Source: Takakia lepidozioides
Lineage: Eukaryota > Plantae > Bryophyta
Assembly (NCBI GenBank): GCA_030704615.1
Contig: CM060731.1
Coordinates: forward strand, 74,028,001-74,092,000
DNA: 64,000 nt
Reading direction: 5' to 3'
The notes under the pieces were generated by a model, which was not told where the DNA came from, searched no databases, and saw nothing but the letters and a program-made list of their open reading frames with translations. The position numbers and the translations under genes were made by a program. Positions 8,983 through 38,330 of this stretch are shown one piece after another. The stretch's first letter is position 1. The number at the start of each line of letters is the position of its first letter.

Positions 8983-11900
8983 ATGGAGGGAACGATGCAC
9001 CAATTGCAGTACTCTAAGTATCATGGAGGCAGTTCAGCTCTTCAGGCATTGCACTTTCGCTCCTCTTCTGTGTCTTCCAGTAATTTGGTTGGATGGTTAC
9101 ACGCATGAAATTCCATACGATGCTTGAGGACGAAGCATTTAGTCGTCTTTTTTTACCAAATAGAAAGTACTCTCTGTCTGTCTCTACTGGCATTGAATCC
9201 GCCATACCCTTGCTGCTATGTTGGGTACCATAAACAGTTCAAGAATCCGAGCAAGAATTTCTCCTCTGTAGGCACAATTCTGTTCTGGATAGAATTACTA
9301 GTGACACGCCTAGGCCCTCTTTCTCGCCAGTAGGAGTATGCAGTTGGGTGATCTCTATGCTTCACTCCCTCTCTCCATAAGTGTATGGATGTCCGCCCTC
9401 TGACATGGCTGAAGAAGCGTCGTATCTGGAGTGAAAGGTCATTGCCCTCTGTTTCACCTACCATTCCCCCGTAAGTTTCTTGCGTGCATGAACGAAATGG
9501 ATTGCTGATGCCAGGTACTCTTTGTGATGATGATGATGAGTGCAGCATGTGGATGTGCCAATCCCCTCTCCCAGGGCGGGGGAGCTCCTGATCAAGGTCG
9601 AGGCAGCCTCTGTGAATCCGGTTGATTGGAGAATTCAGGATGGCTTGGCCAAGTACATCCTGCCTCGCAAGTTCCCATATGTTCCAGGTATCATTTTGAA
9701 TACTGCGGGGTAGCGATCCATTGACGGATCACTACTTCCATGGAATGCTGATCTCATCATAGTGAGCTAAGATGTAATTGTACCTCGAGCCCATCTTGTC
9801 GAACTGATTTTGAGCTGGTTTCTTTTTTGTTGGTTGCAGGCTCAGACATTACAGGCGAGGTAGTGAGTTTGGGTCCGCAAGTGACCGGCTTCAAACCAGG
9901 GGACAAGGTTATCAGCTACTTGAACGTACTGGTATGGCCCTTTTCTTTACTTGTCTCTTTCCATTAGACTCGGAGAAAGCATTTCCTAAGTTTGTCTAGA
10001 ACTAGCATCAGCGTAGATTTTTTTCTTTACGTGAGCATCTGTCAAGTCAGTTGAGTTGAGGAATCCCTATTTTCAACTTGCCATGGAAGCTTTTCCTTCT
10101 GCAAGGGACACAGTCTGTTTATTTGTGATATAAGAGGAGAGACTACAGGAAGGCTTGAAGAAAAGAGACCCACAAACAGTCAGAATCAGTTTACCTGCCT
10201 CAAGGGGTTAGATTTGTAGTGGGATTTATAATCTTGCAATGACCTGTGACATGGTCAATGGAGTGAATCCTCACAAGTCTCAGCTCAACGGGTTTTGGTA
10301 CTTGCAGCTACTTTGAGGGAAAGGAAACTTTGTCTGGAATTTTACAAGCCTTGAAGTCAACGGAAGCTTTCCTTTATCAGACTTAAATTTGGCCTTGTTA
10401 CTGGTTTAGTGGAAAGAGCTAAAAGCAGTTGTAGAATTCTGTGGGGATCAATGCAAGCAGAAGGGGGGCTCGTTGGCAGAGTACGCAGTATCAGCGGCTA
10501 GCACTACCGTCATAAGGGCACCAGGGATTTCAGCAGAACAGGGGGCCTGCCTCCCTGTTGCTGGATTCTCAGCAATACAAAGCGTGCGCAACTTAGCAGG
10601 CATACAATTGGATGGAAGCTCCCAAGGGCTGAATGTCCTCATTACAGCAGCCTCTGGGGGCGTTGGAATCTATGCTGTGCAGGTTGGATGTCTCTCTCTC
10701 TCTCCCTCCCAGCCTGAATAGAATGTACATTGTCCGGGATATTCTCACCAGAGAGTAACCCTCTTCAGGAACATCAACAACATTGTTCCTGCAGCTCTGT
10801 TCACCAACTTTGAAATCTTGAGGCTGAGCCTAAGCCCTGGCCCTGTTGGGGTCTAATTGCTGGGCAGCTCACACACATCAAGTGGATGCTTGTGTGAAGG
10901 GCTTTCTAGAGGATATCTGGAAAGCCCGAATAATCGGCTCTATCAAGGTAAGTCTCACTACCAGAGTGATCCCCTCACCAGTAGTGCCTCTTCCCTTTTG
11001 GTTCACCCAAGCTGGGCTTGGGATATGGCCACAAGGCTACGGCAAACAACGTCTGATGAGTACAATCTCTCCCTCCCATTGGTCCTCGGGCCCCCTTGTG
11101 GATGTTATCTAGAGTTTCCTTAATTTTCTCTCTCATGTTTGTCTGTTTCTTCTTTCTTCCTCTCATGCCCTTTATTGTGCTCCCCTTGTTCAAAACTGGG
11201 CACGAGGACTAGGGCAGGAGGTTAGGACAAGTAAGGTATATTGACTAGATCTCTCATACCTTTCTCTTTCAACATTACTGGCAGTGCAATCAAGCTGCAT
11301 GTCCACACCTCTTGCTAGAAGGATAGAGCAGCAGTGCTGGAATCATCGTATGATGTTAATCCCACCCTATAAAAATTAACACTCAACACTCCAATACCTG
11401 TCAGTGACCCTATTGATTCATATGAGTTTTCTGAAGCAGTAGCAGGACATCTTAACCTACATTGCACCAAGCAATTTGACCAATTACCCGGGATAGAAAA
11501 AGTGGTCTGATTGACAAATTTGTGTGTGTGGTGCAGCTTGCAAAGCTTGGAGGTACCCACCTGACAGTGACATGTGGGGCCCGCAATGTAGAATTGCTCA
11601 AAAGCCTTGGGGCTGATGAGGTTTTGGACTATAAGACCACTGAAGGTGAAAGGTATGAGAGCCCCTCAGGGAAAAAATATGATGTGGTCATCAACTGCGC
11701 ACACTATGTACCCCTTGCCAAGTTCAAGCCCCAGCTCAAGCCCATTGCCAAAGTAATTGACATGACGCCAATCATAACAAGTGTTGCAGCAAGTTTGTAC
11801 AATAGATTCACATTCGCAAAGCAGAAGTTTGTTTGCTTCTACCTGTCGACCAATGGACCAGATTTGCAGACACTGGCAGACCTTCTGAAAGAGGGAAAGT

Positions 11901-12004
11901 TGAGAGGCATTGTGGACTCCACATTTCCATTGAGACAGGCAGGGCAGGCTTGGGATCGCAGTAGTGGAAGGCATGCCACTGGGAAGGTCCTTGTCACGAT
12001 GTAA
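8983..12004 (+). CDS. ceQORH: Chloroplast envelope quinone oxidoreductase homolog-like (MDR family), paralogue 1, 5 exons
   Basis: Exons 8983-9045 (MEGTMHQLQYSKYHGGSSALQ, GC donor), 9546-9687, 9840-9931, 10461-10682 and 11537-12004. Motifs SVNPVDW, LITAASGGVG, LGADEVLDYK and GRHATGKV. Confidence 0.9.
10712..11065 (+). mobile_element. Old 5'-truncated RTE/RTEX-like LINE copy in ceQORH-1 intron 4
   Basis: Diverged match to the 3' end of the 14222 and 34568 copies, ending ATGAGTACAA. The 13-bp TSD TCTCTCCCTCCCA is at 10699-10711 and 11066-11078. Confidence 0.85.
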
Positions 12005-12513
12005 AAGATGTTCTGTGCATGCGCATGTTACATTAGATAAACCCAAGTTTTGTCACAGAAAATTGACTCAACAGCATATATGTGAAATGGACATTCGATC
12101 CATTGCGTGGATTCATGTGAGACATTTTATTGAATAACATATTTTTACTCTTAATCTACTCATCTCTCTAACCAGCTATGATCTTTGCAAACGTTGAAGA
12201 AACAAAAATATAAAGAAACTTCGATAAACTTATCAAGTTCACAAAGCCGGCATGGCTTCTCGCATCCATCTTCACCCCCACCAGTATCTGTGACATCCCC
12301 TTACCTTCCATCGATGAGGGAGGCCTGAATCTTCAGTCTGGGATTGGCATCACAGAACTTGGGTGCACTTGCAATTCTTTTCCTGAAGAATGACATAAGC
12401 TGCTTGGCTACTTTGGTTACACCTAATCTTTGCTAACCTTTCTTCTTTGCCTGCGGTCCTCTCCACGTCTTTGATATTTCACTTGCTGCCAGACAAGTAT
12501 CGGAGTGTCAGAC

Positions 12514-15500
12514 ATGGAAGCTGTTTGTGGGTTGAGTGTTGCAAGCACTGTGGGCCATAAGCTCTACTCGCCGGAGTGCAGGCTATGGCAATGTGGGAAG
12601 AACAAGGCAACTGTGGCACGCCTTGCATTCCGTGCTGCCTTGCCTCGCTCATCTGCCCTCGTGACTCCTACTCTAGTAAGTTCTCTCTCTCTCTTCTTCG
12701 TTCTGTGCGCTTTTCGTCCTTACGGACAGGTTCAGGACTGCACTGCAGTGGGCGTCACGCATTACAAATTCCTCCTCAGACCATCGCGTCAATACGTAAT
12801 AAGGCTACTCCAATGCACAGATCCTCGCCTCGCATCGTCCATTCACTCAGCATGTCAACCCAAGTCCAGACCATAAGTTTATCCGACTCTAGTCTGTAGC
12901 AATAATCACACTTCTCCTTTTGAACAATAGGGTAACAGGCTTCTTTGCTTGGAATTTCTGAAAGAAGCAGTCAGGTACGATGAGAACCTACACTCACGTA
13001 TTTTGAAAAGATCGTGACTTGGAGGGGCAGCCCCAATGCAGGATTGTAGAGTCCAGGGATTCAAATGAGTCACATTGTTGATGACACCAGACAAGAGGGA
13101 CTCGTCAAGAGAAGCCAATGGAGGAAAGTGGAGGAAAAAAGGAAGAGTGAAGTCCTGAAGAGATGTTGGCAATCAGACTGAAGTATTAGAGAAACCGGAA
13201 TGAAGAAATTACATTTTATCTGCAGCAAATGTTGATTTCTTCTCTGCTATTCTAGTGGCACTAGAGAGACAAGCACTTTAAAACTTAAGGAAGCGTTGTG
13301 ATGATTCACACTAATAACTGTAATTATATACTTTATCTTTCTCGTTCCTGGGTTCAACCTATTTTTTATTTAGTACTGGGCTACATTCAACCAAAGAGTT
13401 GTGGAAACTTAAGGTAGGTTTATTTTCAACCACCAGGTCCTCAAGCATGCAGATGAGAAGGAACTCTTTTTCTGTTTTCAATACACCAATTTGTGCACTG
13501 CCTGTATCTTAATCTTTTGGTTTGAGCTTTGTTCTTAGGTTTTAGAACAGTGTCTCAGAATGTCCATTGTGGAACAGGTTTGACCTTGTGTGCACTCTGA
13601 ATCATAAGTACTTAACGCACAGAAGGTCCACTTGCAGCAATTCGTTCGCACCAGACAGTCACAGTGCCTGAGTACCTCAAGGCGGCACCAAATGAAAATA
13701 AAGTGCCAGGCAGCAGCAGAAGAGGCCACCATTGACAACTCCACAGGTGTGCACCCGAGAGAGAGGGAAAGACAGTTCCCCTCTTCATTGAATGAACAGG
13801 GACTTCTGTAATGCTCATCATCATGATTGTATGCAGTCTCATTCCTGCTGTTCCGTGCAGTCTTGGTCGTTGGAGGGGGAGGGCTTGGAATGGAGGTGGT
13901 TCGTATATTTGCCAAGGCTGGATCTTGGGTCACAGCTTATCAGAGAGGGGAGAAATTCCGTAAAGAGATCGAAGAGCTCGGGGCAATGCTGGCTATTGGA
14001 GATGTGTTGGACATTGGTGCTATTGAAAAAACTTTGAAGTCTAACTCATTTGATGCGATTGTCTGCACTGTTGGTAAGATACCCTTTTCACCTATAGTGA
14101 ATCTGCATTTTGGATGAAGTTCTTATTTGCTTGAAGGGGCTGTGCACTTGATTTTTCCAGACATTGTAGTCTTTGTTAAGAGTCTATCGCCATCTCTATC
14201 TTAGTCTCTCTTCCCTTTTCTCTGGGGCTCACTAAATTTTTCCACTGCAGAGGGGTCAACTCTGAGGTTAAGAAAACGATGCTTTGTCGCGTTATTAGAC
14301 CTGCCTTGGAGTACGGATCTGCTATATGGGTTGATAACTCCAACCAGGCTAAGTCTCTAGAATCCATTCAAGTGGGGGTGCTTAAGGAGTGTATGTCAGC
14401 ATGCTCCAAAACAGCCAATGTGGCTGTTCGGGGTGAGTTTGGCATTCCGTCCTTAAGCTCCCGACGAGATGAATTCAAGGTCAGATGGTGGGGTCAGCTG
14501 CAACATATGCCCAACACCAGATATCCTAAATTAATCGACTCTATATCTTGGAAACAGGACCGCCCTGTCAAACAGGCTAAGTCCTGGCAGAAGAGAGTAG
14601 AAGAGATCCTCAAGGACCTGGACCTGGATCCGCAAGTCTTGACCCTGCTGGATAAATCTGACTTAGAGGCTGTAGTGTCCTCAGCCATGTCTGTTGCCAT
14701 GAGATTGTCTGATGAAAATGAAGTTAGGCAGAAAACTTCCCTGAACTTGTTTCCAGTCTGTGACATGGGGGAGGACATCTTGGATGACCTCAAGGGTCTA
14801 CCCACTCTCGGCACTAGACTGAAATTTAAACTCAGGGCAGGAAGCCTACCTTTGAACAGCAAACAGAAGCAGAGAGGAAAGGGAGAGTGCAATTGCCCGT
14901 TGTGTGGGCAATCTGAAGACAGTATTCATTTTCTGATACACTGTCCGGGGTTCTCTCACCAAAGAGACGCTCTCTTCAAATCTATTAAGGGAATTGTGCC
15001 TGTACCCCTGTTTACCAACTTTGAAAGTCTCGAGGCTGAGCCAAAAGCCCAGGCCCTCCTGAGGCCTAGTTTTTGGGCAAATCACACACAGCAGATTGAT
15101 GCTTGTGTGAAGGGATTTCTAGAGGATATCTGGAAAACCCGGATTAATTCTTTATATGGAGGTAAGTCTTACTACCAACGTCAGCCCCTGACAGAGGTAG
15201 GTTCTGTCCCTTTTGTTCCCGCTCAAACTGGGCGCGGGGTCAATGGCCACAAGGCTACGGCAAACAACGTCTTATGAGTACAATCTCTTCCCTTTTCTTG
15301 ATCCAAGATCCAAGGTAAATCATACTACCGGCGTCAGCCCCTGACAAAGGTAGTTTCTGTCGCTTTATGTTCCGTTCAAACTGGGCGCGGGGTCAATGGC
15401 CACAAGGCTACGGCAAGCAATGTCTTATGAGTACAATCTCTTCCCTTTTCTACATTTTCCTTTTCCTCTCTGGCTTTTCTTAAGCACCTTGTGACTAGCA

Positions 15501-17745
15501 GTGCAATCACAGGCGTATGCATAGATTGGGGGCCAGAGAAGCAGTTCTGGAAGCAACATTGTTCTCTAGCATGACAGCCCCTACATAACCACTCAATTCC
15601 CCGTAACTCGATTCTGCTGCATGCATCTGTCAAAGCAATCTGGGGCTGAGTTGCCATACCTTGGTGGGTAGAAACCCCACAGCTCTCACGTTTAATAGGT
15701 GTGAAGCATTAACCATTCTCCTTCTCTGAAAGGGAAATTCTACATGGGTGTACAGGTGGAGGGTCAAAGGAACCAACCGTGGATAAGGTACCGCGCCAGT
15801 TTCTTTTTCCTAAAAGCAGTGTGCTGTTGAGCTGCTGGAGTGCGTGTTGCTTGGGGAACATACCTAGTCAGAAGCTTTGACTTTAAGGTTGAACTAATGG
15901 GATGAGTGTTGGCTGTGTGGCAGGATGGTCCTATTAATTTGATAACTATCGCCAAGAAATTGGGCGTGCGAAGGTTCCTATTGGTAAGCAACACCTGATA
16001 TTCTGCTCCAATCAATCTTTCTCTAAGAAGAGAGATATACCATGTCTGTGTGATGCCAAAAACTGCTATGGATGTCATGCTGTCAGCCTACTGTGTCTAT
16101 TTGGGAAATACTGTTTCCTACAAAGCAAGGCTGGCTTTTGCAAATAGGCAAGTTAGGGCTTAAGTAGGCTATTTTAAAATTTAAATGGGGATGTTTGCTT
16201 GCAGGTATCAAGCATTGGAGCTGGTGATAGTGTGAAGGCAATTGATGAGCGGGTATGTGGAAACCTTTGCAGCTCATCTTCGCTTCAATCTTCCTTCACC
16301 GATGATGCACCAGTTCAAATTCCATAAGCCCTCCGGAGAAAACTCATTGGTCAATGGGGTTGAGCAAAACTGCAATTTTAATTAGTTAATTACTCCAAGT
16401 TCTTCACTAGATGGATCTCTTGGTATTGCTGGTGTGAGGCAGCAGAGATACTACACTCATTGAGCTGTCCTTGGATGTTGGTTTCATTCTCTCTGTCTTC
16501 GGCCTGCGGGACACTAATGCTCCCAGAGCCTGTAGTTGCGTTTAATCCACCATGTCAAGGTACTCTCATCAGCCTGCAATCAACACACACCCGCAATAGA
16601 ATGTACCCGTAATTGGTCTGCCTTGTTATCACACAGCTGTAGTAACCTTGACGCCATATACTGCACATGATATCTCCACTTCTGTGGTGATATGGGACTG
16701 CTCAGTCAGTGGAGCCTCCTCTGCCAAATTAGGCTTCCAGGGGTACTGGACATGAACATACCATTGAATGTAAAGTTGGGGTACCAAGGAAAATATTGCT
16801 GTGAGGTTGTGGTGTGCCCTGAGACAGACAGACAGAAAGAAATAATGTATCATTGTCCAGGGAAGGCCCAGATAGAGAGAGGTTGAGGGCGTACTCCGCA
16901 TAATTGCCCCATCATTCCTCGTCCCAAGTTTGGTCCTAATTTCGATCTACAGACGCTGGAGGTGTTGAGGATAGTGTTGAAGGCCAAGGAGGAGGCAGAA
17001 GAAGCCTTGAGAGCAAGCGGCCTACGTTACACCATCCTTCGTCCTGGGGGCTTGATACCTGCTGTGAGTTGCTCTATTCCAAGCAAGAGTCTGATTCTCT
17101 ATCAGGCATGGATTTGGCAGTCAATAGTGATGCCTGTCAAATCATGTCTCTCTCATGTGGTTTGTTCTTTGAAATGTGTATGATGTGGCAGCCACCAACT
17201 GGTAAAGGCATACTGACAGAAGACCCAAGTGTAGCAGGACTCATCAGCCGTGCTGATGTAGCCTCCCTTGTAAGTGCAGAACCCCTATTCCATCACTTCC
17301 AACCAAAGGTTTCAGTATGCTCCATATTTATAAGTATCACTGCTACCACCCCATACACATTTGATAGGCAAGGTTCATAGGCTGAATATGGGCCTATATG
17401 TGGACCCATGAGTGACTGACCTATGCAAAAGGCCTTTCTTGTGCTCATTCTCTCGCTTTTGTCCTTCCTTTGCATATGCTACCTCGTTATGTTATTTATC
17501 CTAAGCTCCTCTGCTCGGGCCAGTTCATTCATCGTCTTCTTTTACAGTGCCAATATTGGTCCCCATTCGGAGCATAACTTCCAATGTCTGGTTGTACTCC
17601 TAAACACTTTGTACAGATTTTGAGAAGACAAATGGATTTTCAAGCTCATGTTGGCTGGGCAATGGGTTGGTTGACTCAGATCATGAAAATTTTGTTCGAT
17701 AAACGAGCCGAAGAGAAGACATTCTCTGCCTTTGACTGTGAAAAG
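12514..17745 (+). CDS. Plastid-targeted NAD(P)-binding Rossmann-fold protein (atypical SDR, NAD(P)H-binding family); final exon not resolved
   Basis: Exons 12514-12675 (transit-peptide-like), 13623-13746, 13861-14073 (VLVVGGGGLGMEVV), 15756-15787, 15924-15983, 16205-16252 (VSSIGAGDS), 16953-17063 (KAKEEAE..LRASGLRYTILRPGGL), 17192-17269 (ISRADVA) and 17680-17745. Introns are GT-AG and in phase. The stop-codon exon was not identified. Confidence 0.85.
14222..15283 (+). mobile_element. Young 5'-truncated RTE/RTEX-like LINE copy (C-terminal CCHC region) in an intron
   Basis: Open frame to TGA at 15277 with [17 protein letters not shown]; nearly identical to 35618-36669. The 15-bp TSD TCTCTTCCCTTTTCT is at 14207-14221 and 15284-15298. 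Confidence 0.92.
15299..15436 (+). mobile_element. Second, shorter and more diverged copy of the same LINE 3' end
   Basis: Matches the terminal ~125 bp with several substitutions and ends ATGAGTACAA. A third TCTCTTCCCTTTTCT follows at 15437-15451. Confidence 0.88.
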
Positions 17746-20282
17746 GTATGTTCTGGTCTTGGGTTGGGAAGGAAAACATGGACACTTTCACATTTCGCAT
17801 TAATAACTAGTGATATGCTGATGATCTCAACCCAGAGTAGTGGAGCATGTGGGTCAATGTCATCTCATTCCTCTGGGTGTCCTTTAAATATCCATGTAGG
17901 GGATGGATAACGGCCCCTCTCAACACACAGACAATGAGAGGGGAGAGACCAGGCAAAGCCAGAAGGGCTATAAGGGTCTGGTATGTTTGTGTACCATGCT
18001 TGACCAATGTGCGTAAGAGCGAACTTCTTTGCCATTAGACTGATCATAGCCTTAGGCCATTGATCATTTGGGATGTAGTTTCTCTCAGTGGGGATAATCC
18101 CATTGTGGAACTGCTATGGTTCTTGCTGCCAACATGATCCCATTTGGGGAGATTTAGCAGTTTGAAAAAACAGGACATTGGCTGCTTTTTTAAGTGACAT
18201 ATGCAATTACAGATTGAAATATTGTGCGAGGTTACTGAGACTACTGGTGGGTGATTGGGTGCAGTTGCTTCCACCAACAGCTACGCTAGACAATGTTAAG
18301 CTGGCTTCATTTTCTTGAGGCACTTACTATCAGCTAATTTGTAACATTGTAGCACAGCTCAACCAGAAATTACCTGCGTTGTTAGGTCCCCGGATTTTCT
18401 AGCCACAGTCAGGAAGCTTGGAGATTTTTTGGATGGGCCATTGGAGTATTGAGATTTGGTTAATGGTACATTTTCAGCATCTTACCTTGTTGAGTTCAAG
18501 ACATTCTGTGGCTATAGCCACCAATGGCATGAGTATCTGTTTGCCTAGCATTGTCGGGGCCTACTCCAACACCAATGTGGTGGTGAGCATTTGGTGGTTC
18601 ACCAGAATAGGTTCAGTTTTAATGGCTGATGTACCAAGTCAATTTGGCCAATGCACTGCAGATTCGTCAGTCATATCTTCGCAGATGATTAGATCCATAG
18701 AAATGAACTGTTGAATCATGTTCCTAACTACATCCTCCAGCTCTACTTAAAATTTCATAGACTTCCATCATGTGGGTTTGCAAGATGTGCTTCGAACTTA
18801 ACTTCACCGCTCTTATCAAATTGTCTAAGTTGGGATCTACAAGGTGGTTTCTATGTGCAGATTTCAGGTATTTTGGGCATGCTCTCACCCGTTTGAATAT
18901 AAAAACAATAAGGACAATTTTTCTTCTGTCCAGATTGGGGTTTTTGTCCTTAAATTTGGATGAAATCTATCAATTGGCGCCCTTTCAGATTGAGGCACAT
19001 CAGCCCTCTGTTGCCGGGGCGCATCCACCAACGACCCCTTTGAACGAAGGGTGCCCCCATGAATTTAGAGTAGTAGCCCAATTACCACGTGCCAGGCAGG
19101 CCTGATGACATGTCATGCTTTTCGGCCCGGGCAGCCATAACTTTCTTCTTTTTGTAGTAACTAAAATAATTACTAGTATATGTAAGCGGTAAGGTGCAGC
19201 ACCTCCTTATATAAGTAGCCTCCGGAGGCGGGCAGGCCCACCCCTTCAAGCGGTGGTGGAGCCTTCTAGAATGCCCTACATGTCGTCCCTACAGAAACTA
19301 TTTGACACGTATGCACTAGTTGACCCCCCAAAAACACTCTAGTCCAGAGCCCATTGGTTCTTCCAATGCTGTGGCTATTTTTGACCTCTAAACAGCGTCA
19401 TTCCCTCTTTGCAGGTGTCCGTCCACCCGGGCCCCACCTGTCCACCAATGGAAACCCTTGTTCCCTTTGTCCTTCCTATGCGCTCCACCCGTCCTCTCAC
19501 TTGGTCATGTCATCTTCCTACTTACTGGCTAAATTTTCTGAAAATGAAACTTGGGCTGCATATACACTGAGATTATGATGCAAGTGTTTTTCCATGTAAC
19601 CTCAACAATTCACAAATAGGTACCCAAGCACAATCACTTTTCCAATCTGAAGTGTAAATGCGTGTACAAATATGCAAGAGCTGGAGAAGACCGCTGGCTG
19701 CACTCTGCACTTCAGGAAAAGACAACAAGCGAAGTTGCCGCGGGGCAAACTAGATCATGAGTAATATGTTAAAATCTTCTCGAAACATTTTCCAGGCGCA
19801 GTGAAACTTCCATGCATCAGCATAACACAACAAAGCTTTTCAGTGAGCCATCTTCACACTCTCTTTCACCAATCGCGGTAATGTCTGGTGATCAAATCTC
19901 TTACATCCGTTTGGGTCCTGAGGAGTGCGGTGGGGCTGAGTGGCTGAAGTACTACGCACATGAGGGCGCGGGCAGGGCTGATCAGCCAACGGATCAGCCC
20001 TGTAGAACCCAGCGACACTCGCCCTCACCACACACATGGGCGGATGAAATTCCACGACACATCCACCAGGTGAACTCGGGCAAAAATTCACCGTAGCAAT
20101 TTGGTCGTCTCTCTCCTCTCGACGGCACCCACGCCACTCCTCTAAGTGGAGAGCTTTACATCAAGGAGTTTTGAACCAGATACTATGAATGAAAGAGGTC
20201 CGTCATCTTTGCCACTCGTTATAGATTAGTACATATTGAAAAACCCACAAATCTGGTAGCATAAATTAGGTTCCTTGCAAAA

Positions 20283-21910: not shown

Positions 21911-21914
21911 CCAT

Positions 21915-24225
21915 TGTCAAGGACGAGAACATGATTGAACACAAACAAGAGATCAGACTAGAGGTACAAGATTAGACAAAAAGTCAAGGTCGGCGTGGTC
22001 GAATGCATGGTGGGTAAACATAAATCAACATGTTATTTATAACAATGGACAAGAGTACAAGATACTGGAACTCGACTCGAATACTGGAATGCTGGAAACT
22101 GGACTAGAGTACTGGGAGCTGGACTGGAGTACTGGGACTGGGAACAAGAGTAGCTTGAACTTGTATTGGCGAGACTGAAAAATGTCCAGTCTCGCCTCCT
22201 ATATATACTGGCTACTAAGAAGTTCCCTTAGAAGCTTCCCCTATAGAGGTTTCTTGATGGAGAAGCTTCCTTAAACAAAAGAAGTATCTTGATGGAGAAG
22301 TTTCCTCCAAATGAAGTTTCCTGAGCAGTTTCCCAAGTTACTCTTGGTAATTTGGTAAACTTCCGGTAACTTGGTAACTAATGATAAATCATGGTAGATC
22401 ATGGTAAATCACGATAAGTCATGATAACTTCCGGTAACATGGTAACTTGGTAATTTCTGATATTTACTCATGATAAGTTCTTCTGGGCTATGTCCGTGAC
22501 TAACCCCCTCCTCTAGTGTCGAGTTCCTCGAGGAGCGGTAAAATCTTGGACTTGTTTAGAGTTGGAGAAAATCCAAAATCCGACGAATGGTACTTGCCAA
22601 ATATTCGGCTCTTCGTTCTTAACTCAAATGATTTATAGGTCCCTACAACCATCAATAGTGTCCAACACCTTGAACATGTCACTGACTGGAAACAAGTTCG
22701 GGGAAGTTTTCTGCCTAACTTCATTTTCATCATACAATCTCATGGCAACAGACATAGCTTTGGACACTACAGCCTTTAAGTCAGATTTATCCAGCAGGGT
22801 CAAGACTTGCGGATCCAGGTCCAGGTCCAGGTCCTTGAGAATCTCTTATACTATCTTCTGCCAGGACTTAGCCTGTTTGACAGGGCGGTCTTGTTTCCAA
22901 GATATAGAGTCGATTAACTTAGGATATCTGGTGTTGAACATATGTCGCAGTAAGTTGAGCATTCTGATTTTCGAAGCTGCCTTCAAATATGATTTCGTTG
23001 CCCTCTGGGTCTGAAGCCTCAAGTTCCAATAGAATTATCAGACTTCGAGTAGGCTCCACTTGCCGTCGTACGGGGTCCAGACGAGGAAGTACGAGTCGTA
23101 TTGGTGGCCCATCGTCTCGAGAACGTCGGCGTGATATTGAACGTCGTGAGAGTCGGAATGGCTGATCTGGTAGTTGGGTAAGCGACAACTCCAATGTATT
23201 TGGTTCATGTGACTCCATGCTGCCAATACAAGATGCAATAGTGCTAGAAGTGTAGCTATATATACTGATGTGTGGTGCTCATCTCTCCTTAGCGTGTATC
23301 AGGTACATTGAATGTGGAGTCTTCACCTTGAAACTAACTTGGCTGACATCATCGTTGTGACGTCTTATTGACGTGTAGCTCGAGGCTTAGCTGGATATCG
23401 TTGATGAAACTCTTGGATTTTGTCAGATGCTTGGCGAGGTTGGATGAAGGTTCTCACATTCGTTTGCTGATGTCATAGTCTTTCCAATGTACGAAATACT
23501 CAAGACGTTTATACTTGATGCGAACGTCTATGACTTCGTCGACTTCATACTCAATTTTCTGATTGACTTCGATTGGTGGAGGTGGTACGGATACTCTCCC
23601 TGAAATATTCAATGGATGATACAACTCCAATAATGAAACATGAAAAACTGAATGGATGTGCATACTTCGTGGGAGTTCAAGCCGAAAATTGACCGGATTT
23701 ATTTGTTGAATAATTTTGAATGGTCTCAGGCGTTGATAATCCAACTTCCTTGATGGACACGAGGTTTGTATGTCCCGTCGAAGAAGCCACACACGATCTC
23801 CAACCTTGAACTGGGGTTGGAGTTGGCGATGTTGATCTGCATACTCCTTGTATTGTTTTTGAGCTTCTGCGAGGTGGAATATAAGCTCCTTGTAAATCGT
23901 AGCAAGATGAGTAGCAAGGTTTTCTGCAGCAAGGCTTCCAACAGTCTTCATGTGGAAATGATTTGCTCGAGGATGATGACCATAATTGGAGAAAAATGAA
24001 GTTTGTTTGGTCGAAGAATGTATAGAGTTGTTGTAGGCAAACTCAGCCAATGACAGAAGGTCCGTCCAATTATCTTGGTGATAATTTATCGTACAACAAA
24101 GATATTGTTCCAAAATCTGGTTTACACGTTCGGTTTGACCATCAGTCTGTGGATGATTAGCTGTAGAGAGGTTGATCTTAGTATCCAATATGTAAAATAA
24201 TCCCCTCCAAAAATTTGATATACTC
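21915..24225 (-). mobile_element. 3' part of a chromovirus-type Ty3/gypsy element (integrase + chromodomain, PPT, 3' LTR)
   Basis: ORF 23454-24188(-) has HPQTDGQTERVNQ, GPF-like region, IH.VFHVSLL and chromodomain EYEVDEVID...YFVHWKDY. PPT AGAGGAGGGGGTT lies at about 22502-22514(-). LTR spans about 21915-22501. Confidence 0.85.
22676..22950 (-). mobile_element. Internal fragment of the RTE/RTEX-like LINE
   Basis: Reverse-complement match to about 14497-14767. The element's 3' end is absent. Confidence 0.8.
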
Positions 24226-28575: not shown

Positions 28576-28609
28576 GTTCTCTAAAAATAAAAAAAATAAA
28601 AAAATGATC

Positions 28610-29880
28610 AGATATGGGATTGCACTTGGACTTAGATGACATTGGACACTTGGGCCTGTACACGGGAGATGCACTTGGATACTTGAATAGAGGATTGCAC
28701 TTGGGCTTAGATTTCAATTCTTTATACATGGGCCTTGACATATGAGACGTTACTTGAATACATAGGGGATTGCATTTGGACTTAAATTTCATTCTTAAGC
28801 CATGGGCCAATGGCACAGGCTACCCTAGGCCTATATCTCCCAAAGAGGAGGGTCTCTAGATACATAGGGGATTGCACTTGGACTTAGATGACACTGGACA
28901 CTTGGGCCAACGGCACAGACTACCCTAGAGGTTGCATTTGGGCCTCGACATAGAAGACGCACTTTGATACATAGGGGATTGCACTTGGACTTAGATGACA
29001 CTGGACACTTGGGCCAACGCGCAGGCTACCCTATCAATATATGAAGCAAGACGTTTGTTTTGTTTTGTAGCATCGTTGAGATCTTGCAAACCGCAGGGGC
29101 AATGCGTGTGCTTGATGCTGTTGGAAAGCCCTCGATGAGGAGGGGTGCACCTGCTTGGTCTCATGATTTTTGGACAAGCGGTGAGGGAGATGTGGAATTC
29201 CAAATACTTTTGGTCGCTGGAAATTCACAAAAAATAGCAAAAATGGCGAAGTGGGTATTCTGGGACAATGGTTGGAGCCTCGACGGGAGAGATATCAAGG
29301 GAAAGGTCTCCTGTTCAAATCTGGTCGTAAGCTCTCTGCAAAAAAACTTACTTAGATGACGTTGGGCCGTTGGAAATTTGGGAAAAATAGCAAAGTGGGC
29401 ATTCATGGGAGAATGGTTGGAGACTTGACGGGAGAGACAACAAGGGAGAGGTCATATGCTATGTGGGAAAAAAAAAATAGATATGGCTAAATCAATAGAC
29501 TTAGATGACTTAGATGACAGTGGACACTTGGGCCAACGGCACATGCTACCCTAGAGGTCGCACTTGGGCCTCACTTAGGAGGCGCACTAGCTGGATACAT
29601 ATGAGATCTTGCACTTGGGCTTAGATGACACTGGGAATTTGGGCCAACGGCACAAGCTACCCTAGAGGTCGCATTTGAGGCTTGACACAGGAGACACACT
29701 TGGATATATATAGGGGATAACACTTGGAGATATTAAGGGAAAGGTCTCCGGTTCAAATCTGGTCGATGGCTCTATGGAAAAAAATGATTGGATATGGCTT
29801 GCTTCATATATTGATGCACTTGAACTTAGATGAATTGGACACTTGGGCCAACGGCACAGGCTACCCTAGTGGCCCCTGTA
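28610..29880. repeat. Degenerate tandem array (unit about 100-110 bp) interrupted by the dispersed repeat
   Basis: Recurring core GGGATTGCACTTGGACTTAGATGACACTGGACACTTGGGCCAACGGCACAGGCTACCCTAG. Confidence 0.8.
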
Positions 29881-30219
29881 AAGAGCACAAGAAACATACC
29901 GCCTACTACCATAAATGTATCAATTTTAGATTAGAACAAACTGCAAACTGCAAAAGGATGTGGCAATGCATATAACAAACATATCCGAAATATACAAAAA
30001 TGACAAGCATACATACCTTTCTGTGGTTTCCAGAATTCTTCCAATGTACTTAAGCCTAATCTCTTTGTATGACGGTTTCCTAAGGGTAACCCGAATTTGG
30101 TGAAAAGATTTAACCGCCGGCGCCTGGTCAGGGTATTATTATTATTATTATTGACTTTATTGAGATTTGAAAAATTGTTGGGATGCTGGCAACTTGATAT
30201 TTTCAAAACAATAACTATT

Positions 30220-30460
30220 ACCAACAGTTAGTAGCTCAGTTGGTTAGCGCACTGAGTGCCACCCAGATGATTCTGGGATCAAATCCTGCTACTTGACGGG
30301 TGTGGTATGCTCTTCTCCCACTTCCCTTTGGCAATGTCCCATCAGAAAGCCTCACGACGAGGTTACTGTGAAAGAGGTTATTTTTTCCTCTCACTATCAA
30401 GGGGCGTGATTTGTGAGCTGTAGCTCCCAGGTGTTTCCCTTAAGAATATAAATAATAAAA
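30220..30460 (+). mobile_element. tRNA-derived SINE, copy 2
   Basis: Same head and body as 1224-1484 with an A-rich tail. AATAACTATT flanks both sides (30210-30219 and 30461-30470) as a probable TSD. Confidence 0.82.
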
Positions 30461-31434
30461 AATAACTATTTTGTCATAAAAGTCACATTGAACACATCAT
30501 TGGGCACCTCTGGTAGTAAATATGTCGTATTGTCGTATAGTCATATGGCGCACATTAGAAAAGGCCCGGGAGTTTAATGCGACCCCTTCGGTCCTGCGTG
30601 CGTGGCACCCCCCGCCACCCCAGCCGCACCCCCTTCGCCGGCTCCTGCGCGGCTCGCGGTCGCTGCGCCCCGGCGCCCCCTCACCCCCGCGCCAGCCCAC
30701 CCCTCATCCCCCCCCCCCTGCCACCCCCATCCCCCTGCCCGCCCGCCCGCCGGCCGTCACCACACCACATGAACTCTGTGGCACATGACACCTGTCATCA
30801 CAACCCAACATCGCGCGCGGGACACATCGCATGACGAAAGATGGATGGGATGCAACATGATCCATGTGCTGCAATCACCCATGATGATGGACGGCTTGAC
30901 ATGACAGGATGTGACACATACTCATATATGGCCGTAGGGAGATCGCGATGATCATGCTTTCATGCTTTTCGCATCCAGTTCGCACGCACATGGTGGACCT
31001 GTCGATTCGAATGCGGCCCTTCAACTGTCACTCCCCACGTCGATGCTTGATTGATTTAATTCATGGCAGCCACATGACAGGTTTTCCAAGCTACCTGGCG
31101 TTTGCATGGCCCGAAATGTATGATCCCGGCGGAAGCGGTGTTACAAGCACTTCATTGAGGAGTATGCATCGCGGCTGTTATAAACTGTTGATTGAGTTGT
31201 GGCGGTGAAGCGATTACTCATTTGACTTGAGTATAGGGTTTCTTTTTGGAGAATTTGGAAGTCATTCGTGTGATTTTCAGCTATTTTCTTCCTCTTGCTT
31301 GCCATTTCTGTCTGTTGCAGTCCATTTGCATGCTTCATGTTTTAGTTTGAGTTCTTGCTTTCACATTCCAGCAACCTCTGCTCGGCTGGAGGATTCTTCA
31401 GGAGGAGGGTAGTGGATTTGGAGTGGGCGCCGAT

Positions 31435-31932
31435 ATGGTGAAACAATCCTCCATGCGCGAAGCGCGTCGGACATACAATGAAACGTACGACTCTGATGAG
31501 TGGGAAAATTTCATATGTGAGGCTCACTCAGAGGCAAGGGTTGAGCAGCCCGGTGATGATAATAGGAAGCCATTCAAGTGTATCCACTGTCTTAAGCAAT
31601 ATAAAGATAAGAAGAAACTTAACATTCACAGGATAAATGGCTGTGATGCTGCTGTGGGAAAGGGTGGGCCTAAACTGAAAATGTACCCTGTTTTTAAAAA
31701 GGGGAAGAGGCACATCATGGAGGCTGTTCTTAGTAAGCACGGGATGAAGCCTCATTCCTGCAAGTTGATGAAGACGAGGGTAGAACGCGAGGAGACGACG
31801 GCAGAAGAGACTACACGAGAACCTAAGCGCAGGAAGCACATGAGTCTTCGGAAAGAGCCGGGAGTGGACCTTGATGATGATGATGACGATGACGATTTCC
31901 AGTTGTTGGACGCACCACCTGCGCTGCCATAG
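31435..31932 (+). CDS. Unknown zinc-finger (CxxC-x12-H-x4-C) protein or fragment, possibly TE-derived
   Basis: KPFKCIHCLKQYKDKKKLNIHRINGC, a basic NLS-like patch and an acidic run. No family recognised. Confidence 0.35.
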   Translation: MVKQSSMREARRTYNETYDSDEWENFICEAHSEARVEQPGDDNRKPFKCIHCLKQYKDKKKLNIHRINGCDAAVGKGGPKLKMYPVFKKGKRHIMEAVLSKHGMKPHSCKLMKTRVEREETTAEETTREPKRRKHMSLRKEPGVDLDDDDDDDDFQLLDAPPALP

Positions 31933-32339
31933 CAGACTGTTAGACCTCAGCGCACCTCTGTCATCACAGCAAAGTCTTCCATCTGAGCGCATTGTAAACT
32001 CTATGTTTGTACGACCTCCTGTCGTGCCGCAGCAAAGTCTTCGACCCAAAGTGCACGTTGGAGTTGCATCTTCAGGTAGACAAGATAGCAGATCTCTAGT
32101 GCACAATCTTAAGTCCACAACCCTTGCACCGCTAAGTAGAGAAGAGGCAAGGTAAGGCTTTGTCAAGGCGTCGTTGCTACTGACCTCGGATATTGTCGTG
32201 CCTCCCATACCCGCACCTGTTTCATGCCCAAGACTGACCTATCTGATCAAGTTCGACTTGTTTCCCGACGGATTTCCATCTCTGGATGAGCCTTCTTTTC
32301 TCAATCGTCTTGTGGCTCTTATTGGGAAATTTGAGTTCG

Positions 32340-32405
32340 GGGTTGTGAGCTGTCGCTCCGAGGTGTTTCCCTTCTTAAAATAAAATAAAATAAAATAAAA
32401 ATAAA
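32340..32405 (+). mobile_element. Isolated SINE-type 3' tail
   Basis: TTGTGAGCTGTCGCTCCGAGGTGTTTCCCTT followed by (TAAAA)n matches the 3' ends of both SINE copies. Confidence 0.65.
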
Positions 32406-32660
32406 TTCTGAAGTTAGATATGAAATGCTACCCCGAGGTCGACCCTTAATTGATCGTCAGATGCACAATAAACTGAACCATAGATTTATCTAGAATGGAC
32501 GGCGTATTGATGTGGGATTTATGGGTGTGCTTGGTAGGGTTTATGGACTTTAGGGTTCGAAGCTCTTCTTTTCCATCTCCATGCAAGAACACGTTTTGCA
32601 GGCACAGATCTAATAACACCCCGGTCGCTCATCCATCGCTGGACTCTTTGGCAGGAAGCC

Positions 32661-35600
32661 ATGCAGCACGATGAGGTCATATGGCAGGTTATCAACCATG
32701 GACACTGCAGCTACAAGGCCAAGTGAGCTTCCATGGGCATGCCCTGTTTTTCCTTTTTGATTTATAGGATGTGTTGAAACTCTGCCTCTCCTTTTGCCAC
32801 TTTCCGAATGGTCTGTATGGGGCTTCAACGATATTTTTCCGTGGGATTTGTAGGGTTCTGTGTATTCACATGGTTGGTGGTTGTTATGCAGTCTTTGGTC
32901 CACCATTCTATGCATGTGCCTGTGTGTGTGTGTTCTTGTCGTCCTGGGCCAAATAACCAAACAAAAAAGGGAGGCATTGGAGGGAGTGAGATTCATTACC
33001 TTCACCGAAGAGTTTGATTTGCAAGCGAACAATATCAACTGGATGAATACAAATAGTAGGTTATGTTATTTTCATTGAAATGGTAAAGCTATCTGCTTGG
33101 GTTTCTACTCTAGATCGAGCTCTGTGCAAGAGGAATAGTGAAGATTAAACATGCTGATGGAAGGTCAAATTTACATGAATTTGTTTTTTTGGGGTGGGGT
33201 ATGCAGGATGCAGACTCAGAATTTTTGTAGGAATGAAAATAATGTAACAGGTCTATGCAACCGCAGTTCATGCCCGCTTGCCAACAGCCGTTATGCCACT
33301 ATCCGGGAACATGATGGTCAGTTTTTGAGCTCCCTTCTGTACAGCTAGGAGAATAAGTTGAGGAACAGTCTTATAGTGCATTCCATAAATGTCGTTTCTA
33401 ATTTGAATCAGTTTCTGGCTGAAATCACCGCATAGTTCATTTAAAGGAGGGTCACAGCTTGTATCTGGCTCAAGCTTCTTAAGCTGAGAGAATCAGGTAG
33501 AGTGAGTATTTTGAACCTGTGGTGAAAGAGAACTCATGCATTTGATCTGTGGCTCTTTGTTAAGAGGGATATGTCACCTTCACGCACACAGATTAGATGC
33601 ATGGGTTCCTTTTCCTCCAGATGGGTTGACTTACTAGTCAGAGGTCGGCAGCCTACAGCTGATTTGAAGTTCATGCTAGATCCAGTGAGGAAGGTTCAGA
33701 GGGTCCTGCAGAGAGATTTAGTTGAAGAGAAGTTTGAAGGCCGTGAATTTGGTCATGCAAGTGCAGGGACACTTTATTTGTATATGAAAAGCATCGAGAG
33801 AGCCCATGCACCCAAGGACTTATGGGAGCGCATAAAGCTGCCTCGCAATTATGCCAACGCTCTGGAGTTGATTGACAAGTATTTGGTAAGTCTCTTTGTG
33901 CTACTAATGAAATTGTCGTTATGGCTTTGGAATGGGACAATCTTGCAACCTCAATACCTTTTTCAATTGTCATAAGTAGGAGTGGCTTGTGTGGCATGGC
34001 AGGAGCACTGGCCAAAGTTTTTGGTGCACAAGAACAAGCAGCGCCTCACTAAAATGACCCAATACCTCATTCGTATGCGCAAGCTAACCCTCAAAGCCAG
34101 GTCTACCCCTCTTTGCCCTAATCATCTTTTGGAAAGTCGTCAAATGTTTGAAGCAAAACTCCTTTAACAGATGCTAACAAGGGCAGAGGGTGTGGTTTGC
34201 CAGACCAAAACTCATGACGATGCCTGCAAAACAAACTAAAAGAGAGGTTCGACGGGAGGCCAAGGCAGAAACAGCTGCTGTGCTTGACAGGGTAACTTCC
34301 AGAACAGTGGCTGCCCTTTGTCTTCCAGTTACATAAAAGTGACATTAGGTTCCGGACTTAATGCTCATTGAAATGTAATGTTTGGCTGTGGTGGGTGTAG
34401 GCCATAGAGAAGGAATTGCTGCAAAGATTACAAAGTGGAACATATGGCGACATTTATAACTTCCCAGTAAAGGAGTATGAAAAAGTGCTGGCTATGGAGG
34501 AGATGGAGGCTGCAGGTGAAGAGGATGATGAGGTTGGATCTCTTTCTCTGTCTCTCTCTTGCTGTCAGTATATTTCAATGGCTTATAATGCTCCCATTAG
34601 TTCTTCTGAGATTGTGGAAGCAATTGAACATTTAAATGGATATAAAGCTGGTGGACCTGATGGTATTGTCAACGAGCTTATCAAGCACGGTGGCGATCCC
34701 ATGATAGAGGCCCTAGTTCTCCTCTTTAACCTTATCTGGAAGACTGAAATGATCCCCTTTCGCTGGCGATAGGGGGTCATTGTCAATCTATACAAGAAGG
34801 GTGACAGAGAAGAACCGGGGAACTACCGTGGCATCATGCTCCTCATTGCTGTTGGCAAGACATTCTGCAGAGTTATAAGTATTCGTCTCGAGGTTGATCT
34901 GGAGTCTAGAGGTTGTTTCCACGAAGGCCAAGCTGGCTTTCGGCGAAACAGGGGCTGTGTGGATCATATCTTCACTCTAAGCCAGATTATCCAGGGAAGG
35001 AAAAAAGAAGGGAAACCCACTTATGTCTTTTTCCTGGATGTCAAAAAGGCTTATGACACAGTGTGGAGAGATGGCCTATGGTTCCGCCTCTGGTCTTGTG
35101 GGATCAAGGGAAAGATGTGGAGAGTTGTCCACAACTTGTATGCTCACACCAAAAGCTGTGTCACTGTTAACGGACAGAAGTCCAACTTCTTTGACATAGA
35201 CCAAGGTGTAGCTCAAGGATGTACTCTCTCCCCTCTGCTCTTCAATGTTTTCATCAATCAACTCCTCGAGGATGTGGAAAGTGAGGGATTTGGGTTAAGG
35301 GTGGGTGATACCACCATACCAGCCCTTATGTTTGCGGATGACGTCGCAGGCATAGGGGAGACTCCAACCAATCTCCAGGAGTTGATTGATTGCGCGAAGA
35401 GATACTTTGATCTTTGGGGGCTAGAGGCTAATGTCAGCAAATGTGCAGTGGTAGCATTCAACGACAGAGGAGAGGGAGGAAGTGATCTTAAGTGGCAGTG
35501 GGGTAGCCAAGAGATCCCGGTCCTCCCTTCCTACACTTACCTGGGCGTTGAGTTCTCCTCCAATTGTAATTGGGATGCACATATCCGGAAAGTTGTTCAA

Positions 35601-38330
35601 ACTGGCAAGGGCAAAGCTCTGGGGCTCACTAAATTTTTCCACTGCAGAGGGGTCAATTATGAGGTTAAGAAAACCATGCTTTGTCGCGTTCTTAGACCTG
35701 CCTTGGATTACGGATCTGCTATATGGGTTGATAACTCCAACCAGGCTAAGTCTCTAGAATCCATTCAAGTGGGGGTGCTTAAGGAGTGTATGTCAGCATG
35801 CTCCAAAACAGCCAATGTGGCTGTTCGGGGTGAGTTTGGCATTCCGTCCTTAAGCTCCCGACGAATTCAAGGTCAGATGGTGGGGTCAGCTGCAACATAT
35901 GCCCAACACCAGATATCCTAAGTTAATCGACTCTATATCTTGGAAACAGGACCGCCCTGTCAAACAGGCTAAGTCCTGGCAGAAGAGAGTAGAAGAGATC
36001 CTCAAGGACCTGGACCTGGATCCGCAAGTCTTGACCCTGCTGGATAAATCTGACTTAGAGGCTGTAGTGTCCTCAGCCATGTCTGTTGCCATGAGATTGT
36101 CTGACGAAAATGAAGTTAGGCAGAAAACTTCCCTGAACTTGTTTCCAGTCTGTGACATGGGGGAGGACATCTTGGATGATCTCAAGGGTCTACCCACTCT
36201 CGGCACTAGACTGAAATTTAAACTCAGGGCAGGAAGCCTACCTTTGAACAGCAAACAGAAGCAGAGAGGAAAGGGAGAGTGCCCGTTGTGTGGGCAATCT
36301 GAAGACAGTATTCATTTTCTGATACACTGTCCGGGGTTCTCTCACCAAAGAGACGCTCTCTTCAAATCTATTAAGGGAATTGTGCCTGTACCCCTGTTTA
36401 CCAACTTTGAAAGTCTCGAGGCTGAGCCAAAAGTCCAGGCCCTCCTGAGGCCTAGTTTTTGGGCAAATCACACACAGCAGATTGATGCTTGTGTGAAGGG
36501 ATTTCTAGAGGATATCTGGAAAACCCGGATTAATTCTTTATATGGAAGTAAGTCTTACTACCAACGTCAGCCCCTGACAGAGGTAGGTTCTGTCCCTTTT
36601 GTTCCCGCTCAAACTGGGCGCGGGGTCAATGGCCACAAGGCTACGGCAAACAACGTCTTATGAGTACAATCTCTTGCTGTCACTCATAGATGCACCCAGT
36701 TCCCTCTGGTCCCTATAGTGTAATGGGCTTGCTACCAGGTCAGATAGGGGGCTGCAGTGGCAGTATTGGGCTCGACATAATGAGCTCTACGAAGATGTCA
36801 AGGCTAGTCCTTCATTCAACCCACAACATCCTTACAGAGGATCGTGATCTCTATGTGACCACTCTGGCAATTTCGGGCTTAGTTTGAAACCCGGACGAGT
36901 TAAAAACCACAATTGCACTTAGAGGTGATTATCTAGTGAGGACTACATGCCCATGGGTATGCAGTGACAGTGAAGGTATCTATCTTTCTCTCACAGAATG
37001 TCTAGAGTGAGTGAGATTGAGGCTGAGGTGAGTTCGGTAATGTGTTCTCGGAAGCTCGTTTGACTCGATATCTGATAACCCACTATATAGGGAGATTTGA
37101 TCCTACTTCACTTTTTTACATCAGGTCCAAGGCCTTCCAACACCAACATGCTCACAATGTGTGTAGAAGTGCCTAATGGGCTATTTAACTTGGTGTATGT
37201 GTTCAGGAAGCAGAACCTGAGGTAGAATATGTGGAAGGTTATGAGATGGAGGATGAGGGCGATGATGCCCTCGAAGATTTTGCCCTTGGCATTAACAGAC
37301 AGTCAGATACAGCTGATGGTAAGATACAGATACAGATTGTGGGGTTTTTCACTAAGTATCATGGATCTATTCCAGATGAAGGTGGGTATGTACTCTTGAA
37401 GTTTATCTCTGTTCTAGTGCATTCATTGTCTCTTTGACCACTTGTTTCAGAGGTTCTAAAACAGCCATGTGTCCACATCACAGCTTTGGAGACTTGATTT
37501 GTGCTGCGTAAACCTGTAGTCAACCCAACTCAAGTTCTCCGTTGTTGGACTTAATTCCATCACTTCTTGGCTCAAATTTTATCCTTGTGTAGGCTTAAGT
37601 CCCTCAAAGACCGTCATCTGTTGGGCTCTGCCCCGGTGGCATGTTGGCCCATCTAGATCTAGAACATTCAGCTGGATTATCAATGTTTTGAGTAATAAAT
37701 GTGGGTTGATAACTGAATACTTCGTCTATAATTATATCAGAACTTAGTGCAGTAAAGTGCATTTGTTTTTCTGGAACAGATGATGCCGATGAGGAGTTTA
37801 ACGGTTCAGATGCATCAGATGAAGCTGATGTAAAAGCAATAAGTGGATTGCAACTGACCAATGGGCCCACGAGACTGCCTAAGGGTCCTCTTGCAGCAGG
37901 TGGTAAGAGGGGCGATGCAAATCAGGATGAGGTGGTCACTGCTAAGAGGAGAAAAAGACGACCCCATGTTGAGGTATGTGTGCATCTCCAAAGTGGCCTA
38001 TGGTTGCTGATTCACAAGGTTCAACTTGTATATTTGTTGTAGAGGTCTTGTAAGATGCATGGGAGAGAACTTAGATGCTGATTTGGATGTCTTGCTACTC
38101 CTCTTTCATAGAGATTGAAGAATTTCTGCTCACTGCACAGCCTGTATTGAGCCGACTGTCTTCTTTTGAGACTTATTAAAAATTGCAGTACACCATTTTT
38201 ATTTTCCAGCTTCTTGGGGTTTTTTGTCCGTTCATTCTGCTGAGAGGCACTTCCGTTTTGTGGGGGGGTATTGTTCTTGGGGCAGATCGAGTATGAACAG
38301 GAGCACGAAATGCCATCCGCTGCCCTCTGA
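32661..38330 (+). CDS. MAK16: Protein MAK16 (60S biogenesis factor), 9 exons
   Basis: Exons 32661-32722 ([19 protein letters not shown]), 33207-33316 ([26 protein letters not shown]), 33767-33885, 34003-34100, 34204-34291, 34401-34532, 37207-37318, 37780-37973 and 38286-38330 (IEYEQE). All introns are GT-AG and in phase. Confidence 0.93.
34568..36669 (+). mobile_element. 5'-truncated RTE/RTEX-like LINE (RT + CCHC) in MAK16 intron 6
   Basis: RT motifs [41 protein letters not shown] and LMFADD. One stop (34770-34772) and a 5-nt deletion near 35862. The 13-bp TSD TCTCTTGCTGTCA is at 34555-34567 and 36670-36682. Confidence 0.93.

Follow-up and report, generated by a model that had tools for sequence, protein, structure and literature searches.

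Four LINE copies in predicted introns

The window analysed here, a stretch of 64,000 nucleotides of the bryophyte Takakia lepidozioides (contig CM060731.1, positions 74,028,001 to 74,092,000), carries several copies of one LINE (long interspersed nuclear element) family among the exons of plant genes. A first-pass annotation had listed four 3′-intact copies, here c1 to c4, and sequence reading, a BLAST search with the longest copy and a pattern search located all of them on the plus strand at the positions given there (Table 1). The copies differ in their 5′ ends, all of which are truncated, and share the 3′ end (...ATGAGTACAA). As is typical of LINEs, the extent of 5′ truncation varies, the 3′ end is fixed and target site duplications (TSDs) flank the copies. 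The 15-mer ATGAGTACAATCTCT occurs four times in the window compared with 0.24 expected, and none of 100 shuffles reached four. In addition, two internal fragments of the same family, absent from the earlier list of copies, were found on the minus strand. Such pieces may derive from copies that other insertions interrupted or that other repeats took up.

Table 1. Positions of the element copies, their duplications and related features in the window
Feature	Position	Strand	Evidence or remark
c1	10712-11065	+	5′-truncated, 3′-intact; divergent subfamily, 77% identical to c4
c1 TSD TCTCTCCCTCCCA	10699-10711 (5′) and 11066-11078 (3′)	+	script check
c2	14222-15283	+	98% identical to c4; intact C-terminal open reading frame (ORF) 14279-15277
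c3	15299-15436	+	138-bp 3′ fragment, ~90% identical to c2; an older, independent insertion at the target of c2
c2/c3 15-bp TSD TCTCTTCCCTTTTCT, three times	14207-14221, 15284-15298, 15437-15451	+	before c2, between the copies, after c3
c4	34568-36669	+	longest copy, 2102 bp; reverse transcriptase (RT) and C-terminal domain; in-frame stop 34770, frameshift near 35860
c4 TSD TCTCTTGCTGTCA	34555-34567 (5′) and 36670-36682 (3′)	+	script check
RT segment, c4	34773-35918	+	Pfam RVT_1, E=1.1e-32
C-terminal domain ORF with CCHC-type motif, c4	35899-36663	+	stop TGA 6 nt before element end
Two-hairpin 3′ RNA module, c4 (predicted)	36603-36647	+	hairpins 36603-36624 and 36625-36647; covariation
Two-hairpin 3′ RNA module, c2 (predicted)	15217-15261	+	counterpart of c4 module
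Invariant 22-nt 3′ terminus ending GAGTACAA	36648-36669	+	3′-end comparison
Internal fragment of the c1-c4 family	22675-22950	-	92% identical; without either end, without TSD
Internal fragment of the c1-c4 family	56183-56414	-	93% identical; without either end, without TSD
Unoccupied (CT)n tract, start of paralogous oxidoreductase intron	45094-45125	-	intron comparison

The host exons were searched against Pfam singly, exon by exon, and not joined into a spliced model. Their homologies placed all three insertion sites in introns of plus-strand genes. c1 lies between quinone-oxidoreductase-like exons (paralog homology at 10454-10708; 11522-12001 matches ADH_zinc_N_2), and its nick is 16 nt past a putative 5′ splice site at 10683. 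c2 and c3 lie ~133 nt past a Rossmann-fold exon that ends near 14074, and c4 lies 22 nt past a Mak16 exon, which spans just the middle of the profile (positions 30-67 of 100). The distance to the 5′ splice site is thus within ~135 nt at all three sites. The exon homologies support the earlier claim of sense insertion into predicted introns, with the limit that three sites carry no statistical weight.

Two host introns had been annotated as starting with GTTGGAT, and both starts are present (10683-10700 and 34533-34560). Each of these two unrelated host introns opens with GTTGGAT and then a CT tract. Such a sequence is unusual for a 5′ splice site, and the common start could be a coincidence or a local intron-start pattern. 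The paralogous oxidoreductase intron begins with a (CT)n tract that is indeed empty, as had been stated, and that lies on the minus strand at the position given in Table 1. Because ~40 further CT tracts of the window are also unoccupied, the intronic sense placement may only reflect where the sense-strand CT tracts lie.

Target site duplications in a fixed register

The TSDs had been described as 13-15 bp long and starting with TCTCT. All pairs proved identical by a script check, and this holds for three independent sites, at each of which TCTCT is preceded by TC. TCTCT occurs in the window at a rate of 0.0024 per position and strand, and the chance of finding it in the same register at three independent sites is ~1e-8. 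The motif also heads the upstream TSD copy at 3/3 sites and was therefore present in the uninterrupted target, so that it is not only a tail. The description of the element as tail-less likewise held for the window copies, which carry neither poly(A) nor a repeat tail and join the target directly with their CAA end.

On the other hand, TCTCT might be a short (TC)n tail of the element itself, in which case the real TSDs would be 8-10 bp long and the upstream TCTCT a coincidence of the CT-rich surroundings. Relatives of the element do carry microsatellite tails, and every insertion site is CT-rich. However, the duplication stays perfect across TCTCT at 3/3 sites, the TC units at the junction never exceed those of the upstream copy, and the same register three times would be unlikely even within CT tracts; moreover, targeting of CT tracts would still be required. 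We regard this explanation as very improbable.

The positions of the duplications show where the nicks fall. The bottom strand is opened directly 5′ of the top-strand TCTCT and the top strand 13-15 bp farther on, and the product is a direct junction of ...GAGTACAA to TCTCT.

One target used twice by c2 and c3

c3 is ~90% identical to the matching part of c2, whereas c2 is 98% identical to c4, and c3 deviates at several positions from nearly all contigs of the family (see below). The divergence of c3 compared with the 98% identity of c2 and c4 indicates that two separate insertion events took place. Judging from this comparison, c3 inserted first and c2 entered later into the upstream copy of the same site. 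Both insertions produced an identical 15-bp duplication; therefore, each of the two nick positions was used two times. An origin of the c2/c3 pair by template switch or unequal crossover was rejected, with a TSD between the copies and with TSDs that are identical though the copies differ by ~10%. The copies thus show how an array arises: the upstream copy of the site is left intact after an insertion and can be hit again, which leads to head-to-tail arrays with the younger copy upstream.

At the start of c3 (15299-15308), 10 nt (TGATCCAAGA) partly repeat the 7 nt of element sequence that come next (ATCCAAG), as a 5′-junction filler or a microhomology footprint.

Junctions in genome-wide contigs

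Logan contigs from four runs were compared with positions 10600-15560; two of the runs are of the same organism, one is of a plant metagenome and one (X6) is of another organism. Such contigs collapse repeats; they give good support for a genome-wide CT flank and yield neither counts nor a logo. In each same-organism run, ~12,800 contigs matched at at least 90% identity, and the family is very abundant. The summed word depth over c2 was four orders of magnitude above that of the single-copy flank, a value that is not a copy number. Run X6 contained only a few low-depth pieces and yielded no orthologous empty site.

Among the best-supported loose ends at the 3′ junction of c2, 77-79 contigs departed after ACAA+TCT into unrelated sequence, and 81-85 departed after ACAA+TCTCT and continued CT-rich, often as (CT)n. 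Another 79 departed one base before the element end and continued with TTCTCT. In the plant-metagenome run, 10 contigs also broke after ACAA+TCTCT. In addition, go-back joints led from the 3′ end plus TCTCT, via CTCTC or ATCTCTCC, into a 5′-truncated copy. Head-to-tail stacking is therefore common in the genome, and the TCTCT rule appears to hold genome-wide.

If the element had only a regional preference, for open chromatin or transcribed 5′ intron regions, no nucleotide rule would be needed and the intronic sense bias would be primary. The position of all three sites, intronic, in sense and within ~135 nt of a 5′ splice site, would agree with this, but the fixed start of the TSDs, the re-use of a site and the CT-run head-to-tail joints elsewhere in the genome would be left unexplained. 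A purely regional rule hence seems hardly credible.

Coding capacity, relatives and class

The C-terminal domain of ~330 aa follows the RT, contains a CCHC-type motif and shows weak matches to zf-RVT; pairwise comparison found it to be homologous in relatives. Its stop codon TGA lies inside ...ATGAGTACAA. An exhaustive HMMER search of ~15 billion predicted proteins returned 95,066 relatives, the best of which were LINE ORFs. The closest relatives in this library are in Ectocarpus, with 49% identity over the whole piece and 59% over part of it; none was closer, and the family itself is therefore not represented in the ~15 billion predicted proteins. A word search with the 332-aa C-terminal ORF gave no match. 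The relatives were located in Ectocarpus, in eukaryote assemblies where the neighbouring genes (SRCR, LDLa) are of animal type and in contigs from metagenomes or from Logan.

The full-length relatives have a single ORF of 1255-1480 aa, which consists of an N-terminal extension, an apurinic/apyrimidinic endonuclease (APE), the RT and the same C-terminal domain. Exo_endo_phos or Exo_endo_phos_2 was identified in relatives with 38-67% RT identity; these are the domains that all window copies, being 5′-truncated, lack. When the RT of the full-length relative P0122 (locus L030; 45% RT identity) was compared with solved structures, L1 ORF2p scored 1e-27 and R2 2e-25. P0122 is thus no closer to L1 ORF2p than to R2, which argues against membership of the L1/Tx1 group as far as the RT comparison goes. 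The ESM Atlas returned generic RT clusters only, and the names of the library clusters contained no clade labels.

The RTE/RTEX label of the first-pass annotation is plausible on the traits of the window copies and their relatives. RTE-like are the very short 3′ untranslated region (UTR) with the stop codon near the 3′ end, the lack of poly(A) and the microsatellite-like ends of the relatives; the relatives further resemble RTE/RTE-X elements in their single long ORF with APE before RT and in their occurrence in brown algae and marine animals. Classical RTE elements are not known to have a Cys-His motif after the RT, whereas the present family has the CCHC motif in a C-terminal domain, and its relatives have the long ORF given above. 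RTEX is described as having a substantial ORF1, and RTE as having none or a rudimentary one (PMC3905857). The relatives at L029, L030 and L033 have one ORF each with only 120-830 nt upstream, and no substantial ORF1 was seen in these three. LINE/RTE-X elements have been reported around Marchantia centromeres with no mention of targeting (bioRxiv 10.1101/827881), and RTEX-1 has been reported in Saccharina (PMC4421812).

Two relatives showed further peculiarities. In GC-rich L030 (5265-5300), the ORF stop ...GAGTGA of P0122 is followed immediately by a CT-rich run (TTCCCTGCCTCCCTCCTCTCC), and the contig ends in a poly-G artefact; L030 may represent a second lineage with CT-rich targets. At L027 (6880-7420), a relative is interrupted near its 3′ end by an insert that, by eye, appears to encode an integrase-like peptide.

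A two-hairpin module near the 3′ end

The last 41 nt of c1 and c4 are identical at 40/41 positions, though their subfamilies are only 77% alike overall. The 3′ ends of the relatives L001 and L029 resemble those of the window copies at the nucleotide level, synonymous positions included. Within this region a module of 17 pairs was predicted, in which 94% of the cells are paired, compared with 29-54% when the partners are slid. Five of the pairs have compensatory changes, and 0/500 shuffles reached the observed values. The module overlaps the last ORF codons in the window copies, L001 and L029; at L033 it lies ~250 nt past the stop codon in the non-coding 3′ UTR. The covariation points to a two-hairpin module that is conserved in distant relatives. 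The proposed structure rests on covariation because the single-sequence fold of the last 135 nt was no better than that of shuffles (z = -0.93).

The comparison covered loci with a usable 3′ end, which excluded the Ectocarpus loci L026 and L031 and locus L027; in L028 and L032, no recognisable 3′ module was found. Rfam gave no match for the module, and ARAGORN found no tRNA in the window copies. In metagenome DNA, the 3′-terminal 24-mer, searched for exactly, had 0 matches, and a degenerate hairpin pattern had 24 bacterial matches attributable to chance only. The L033 module (4285-4325) reads TCAGGATG ... ATGGCCAAGCGGCTAAGAC, and we take it to resemble the 5′ part of tRNA-Leu/Ser (D-arm region).

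Past the module, these relatives have true microsatellite tails: (TTA)n in L001 and L029 and (CAAA)n in L033. The full-length L029 copy (3960-7888) is flanked by a 16-bp TSD, TTGTTAACAATGCTTT, that has only TT in common with its (TTA)3 tail.

Other features of the window

A Dof zinc-finger ORF is located at 41743-42573, and the nearest Atlas clusters are streptophyte, in line with a streptophyte host. An inverted pair of ~470 bp with 76% identity (7030-7501 and 29033-29502), accompanied by shorter internal repeats at 7059-7315, belongs to an unclassified repeat family. Gypsy-type fragments on the minus strand (23457-24188 and 47989-48588) comprise a piece of an integrase (SH3/chromodomain) and a piece of an aspartic protease.

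A possible mechanism of integration

There is, in our estimation, about an even chance that the family is a very abundant tail-less APE-type retrotransposon without long terminal repeats that integrates by target-primed reverse transcription at TC^TCTCT. The freed ...AGAGA-3′ end would then have to pair with UCUCU at the template RNA's 3′ end. Since the element has no tail of its own, this UCUCU would be supplied by read-through into the 3′ TSD of the donor copy, which would make the target rule self-perpetuating. The conserved two-hairpin module, which lies ~22 nt upstream of the 3′ end, would place the RT, and a preference of the endonuclease for pyrimidine tracts probably contributes. The sense orientation in introns would follow from the sense-strand CT tracts near 5′ splice sites. 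The first-pass annotation had proposed that a sequence-specific endonuclease or a priming rule steers the element into intronic safe havens. A nicking or priming rule at the nucleotide level is the best reading of the TSD register and the contig break points, and the part concerning introns rests on the three sites.

Pairing of the freed end, read-through from the donor and docking of the RT on the hairpin module are together our preferred reading, to which we attach middling confidence. Pairing is favoured because the overlaps vary (TCT, TCTCT or (CT)n), because relatives have tails and because a TSD signature of RTE-related elements has been published. In RTE-related retroposons the first TSD nucleotide follows the 3′ microsatellite, which was ascribed to nick-site choice and/or base pairing (PMC6007223). 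The mixture of TCT and TCTCT overlaps fits pairing better than a fixed recognition word.

Sequence recognition by the APE is assumed for the site-specific elements of the Tx1 and R1 clades. The endonuclease alone could read the target here as well, in that the APE would nick bottom-strand 5′-AGAGA^GA-3′ and no pairing with RNA would be needed. The exact register at all three sites with TC always preceding and the re-use of the c2/c3 site with both nicks at identical positions would be expected of such an enzyme, and there is a precedent in fish Kibi, a (TC)n-targeting element with an APE (PMC3812793). However, many copies seem to have only TCT in common with the reference flank and others enter long (CT)n, the relative L029 inserted at a non-repeat site with its own tail, and the endonuclease is known from relatives only. 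Recognition by the endonuclease alone is thus possible, at a likelihood clearly short of even. The pairing and endonuclease readings are not mutually exclusive.

Several points weigh against the proposed pairing mechanism. The UCUCU at the transcript 3′ end is predicted from DNA sequence, and because the window copies are all 5′-truncated, their endonuclease is represented by that of relatives. Only three independent sites were read directly. The loose-end figures cover the best-supported rows only, with breaks directly after ACAA outside their scope, and the collapsed repeats in the contigs allow neither counts nor a logo. Finally, the exact re-use of both c2/c3 nicks would suit a sequence-reading endonuclease at least equally.

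Comparison with known target-specific LINEs

Kibi, a (TC)n-specific APE LINE of the Tx1 clade in zebrafish and pufferfishes, regenerates the repeat upon insertion, which allows tandem copies (PMC3812793). The present family is similar in being an APE-type LINE (the APE being that of relatives) that enters TC repeats and forms tandem copies. Kibi, however, is an animal element of the Tx1 clade, whereas the host here is a streptophyte and the RT is without special affinity to L1-group ORF2p. Moreover, the targets here are short TCTCT words in mixed CT tracts and not only long microsatellites. Kibi and Koshi (Tx1) and Waldo and Mino (R1) share with it the fixed register in a simple repeat, found here at 3/3 sites and in agreement with the contig break points, and tandem head-to-tail copies separated by target sequence, as in c2/c3 and the go-back joints.

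The LINEs and short interspersed elements of the RTE clade (Nishiyama and Ohshima 2018, PMC6007223) are alike in that the first TSD nucleotide matches the 3′ end and poly(A) is lacking, and nick-site choice and/or pairing of the template RNA with the nicked target was proposed as the cause. The published overlap is 1-2 nt in elements with repeat tails of their own, whereas it is 3-5 nt or more in the tail-less copies described here, in which the target word acts as a real specificity and leads to re-used sites and arrays. R1 and R2 likewise re-use one target precisely and form tandem copies with target sequence between them, but their targets are single long ribosomal DNA sequences, and the endonuclease of R2 is restriction-like. 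In the case of R1Bm, initiation is said to be helped by target sequence that read-through adds to the RNA 3′ end, according to the literature cited in PMC6007223.

With regard to the RNA handle, the hairpin module near the 3′ end, which very distant hosts retain with compensatory changes, resembles that of the L2/UnaL2 type. Such 'stringent' LINEs are recognised through a conserved 3′ stem-loop. In contrast, the present module overlaps the last ORF codons in the window copies, L001 and L029, and its sequence is unrelated to the published stem-loops checked.

To our knowledge, target specificity among LINEs is nearly confined to the early-branching clades with a restriction-like endonuclease and to Tx1 and R1, and nearly all of these elements have been described in animals and protists. 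The claim of novelty made in the first-pass annotation can be kept in part: no CT-word-specific LINE in a plant or bryophyte was found in the searchable literature, but (TC)n targeting itself is already known from fish Kibi. New features here are the position of the stop codon, 6 nt before the 3′ end, and the predicted two-hairpin 3′ module conserved in distant relatives.

We tentatively propose, with confidence somewhat short of even, that the family is a sequence-specific APE LINE lineage outside Tx1 and R1 that is active in a land plant and has given up its own tail. The donor target duplication would supply the priming sequence, so that target and template end would regenerate each other, and the results would be polar head-to-tail arrays and thousands of sense insertions in the CT tracts with which introns open at their 5′ ends. 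A hugely amplified plant family that targets a 5-nt word, lacks a tail and carries a deeply conserved 3′ RNA handle would help to separate specificity of the endonuclease from that of RNA pairing, and both sources of specificity could easily be manipulated here, given so short a word and so small a handle. Such a family would also account for part of the genome architecture, namely the LINE stacks and the CT-tract insertions in introns, and the annotation of bryophyte genes would need to treat simple-repeat tracts as landing pads for transposons.

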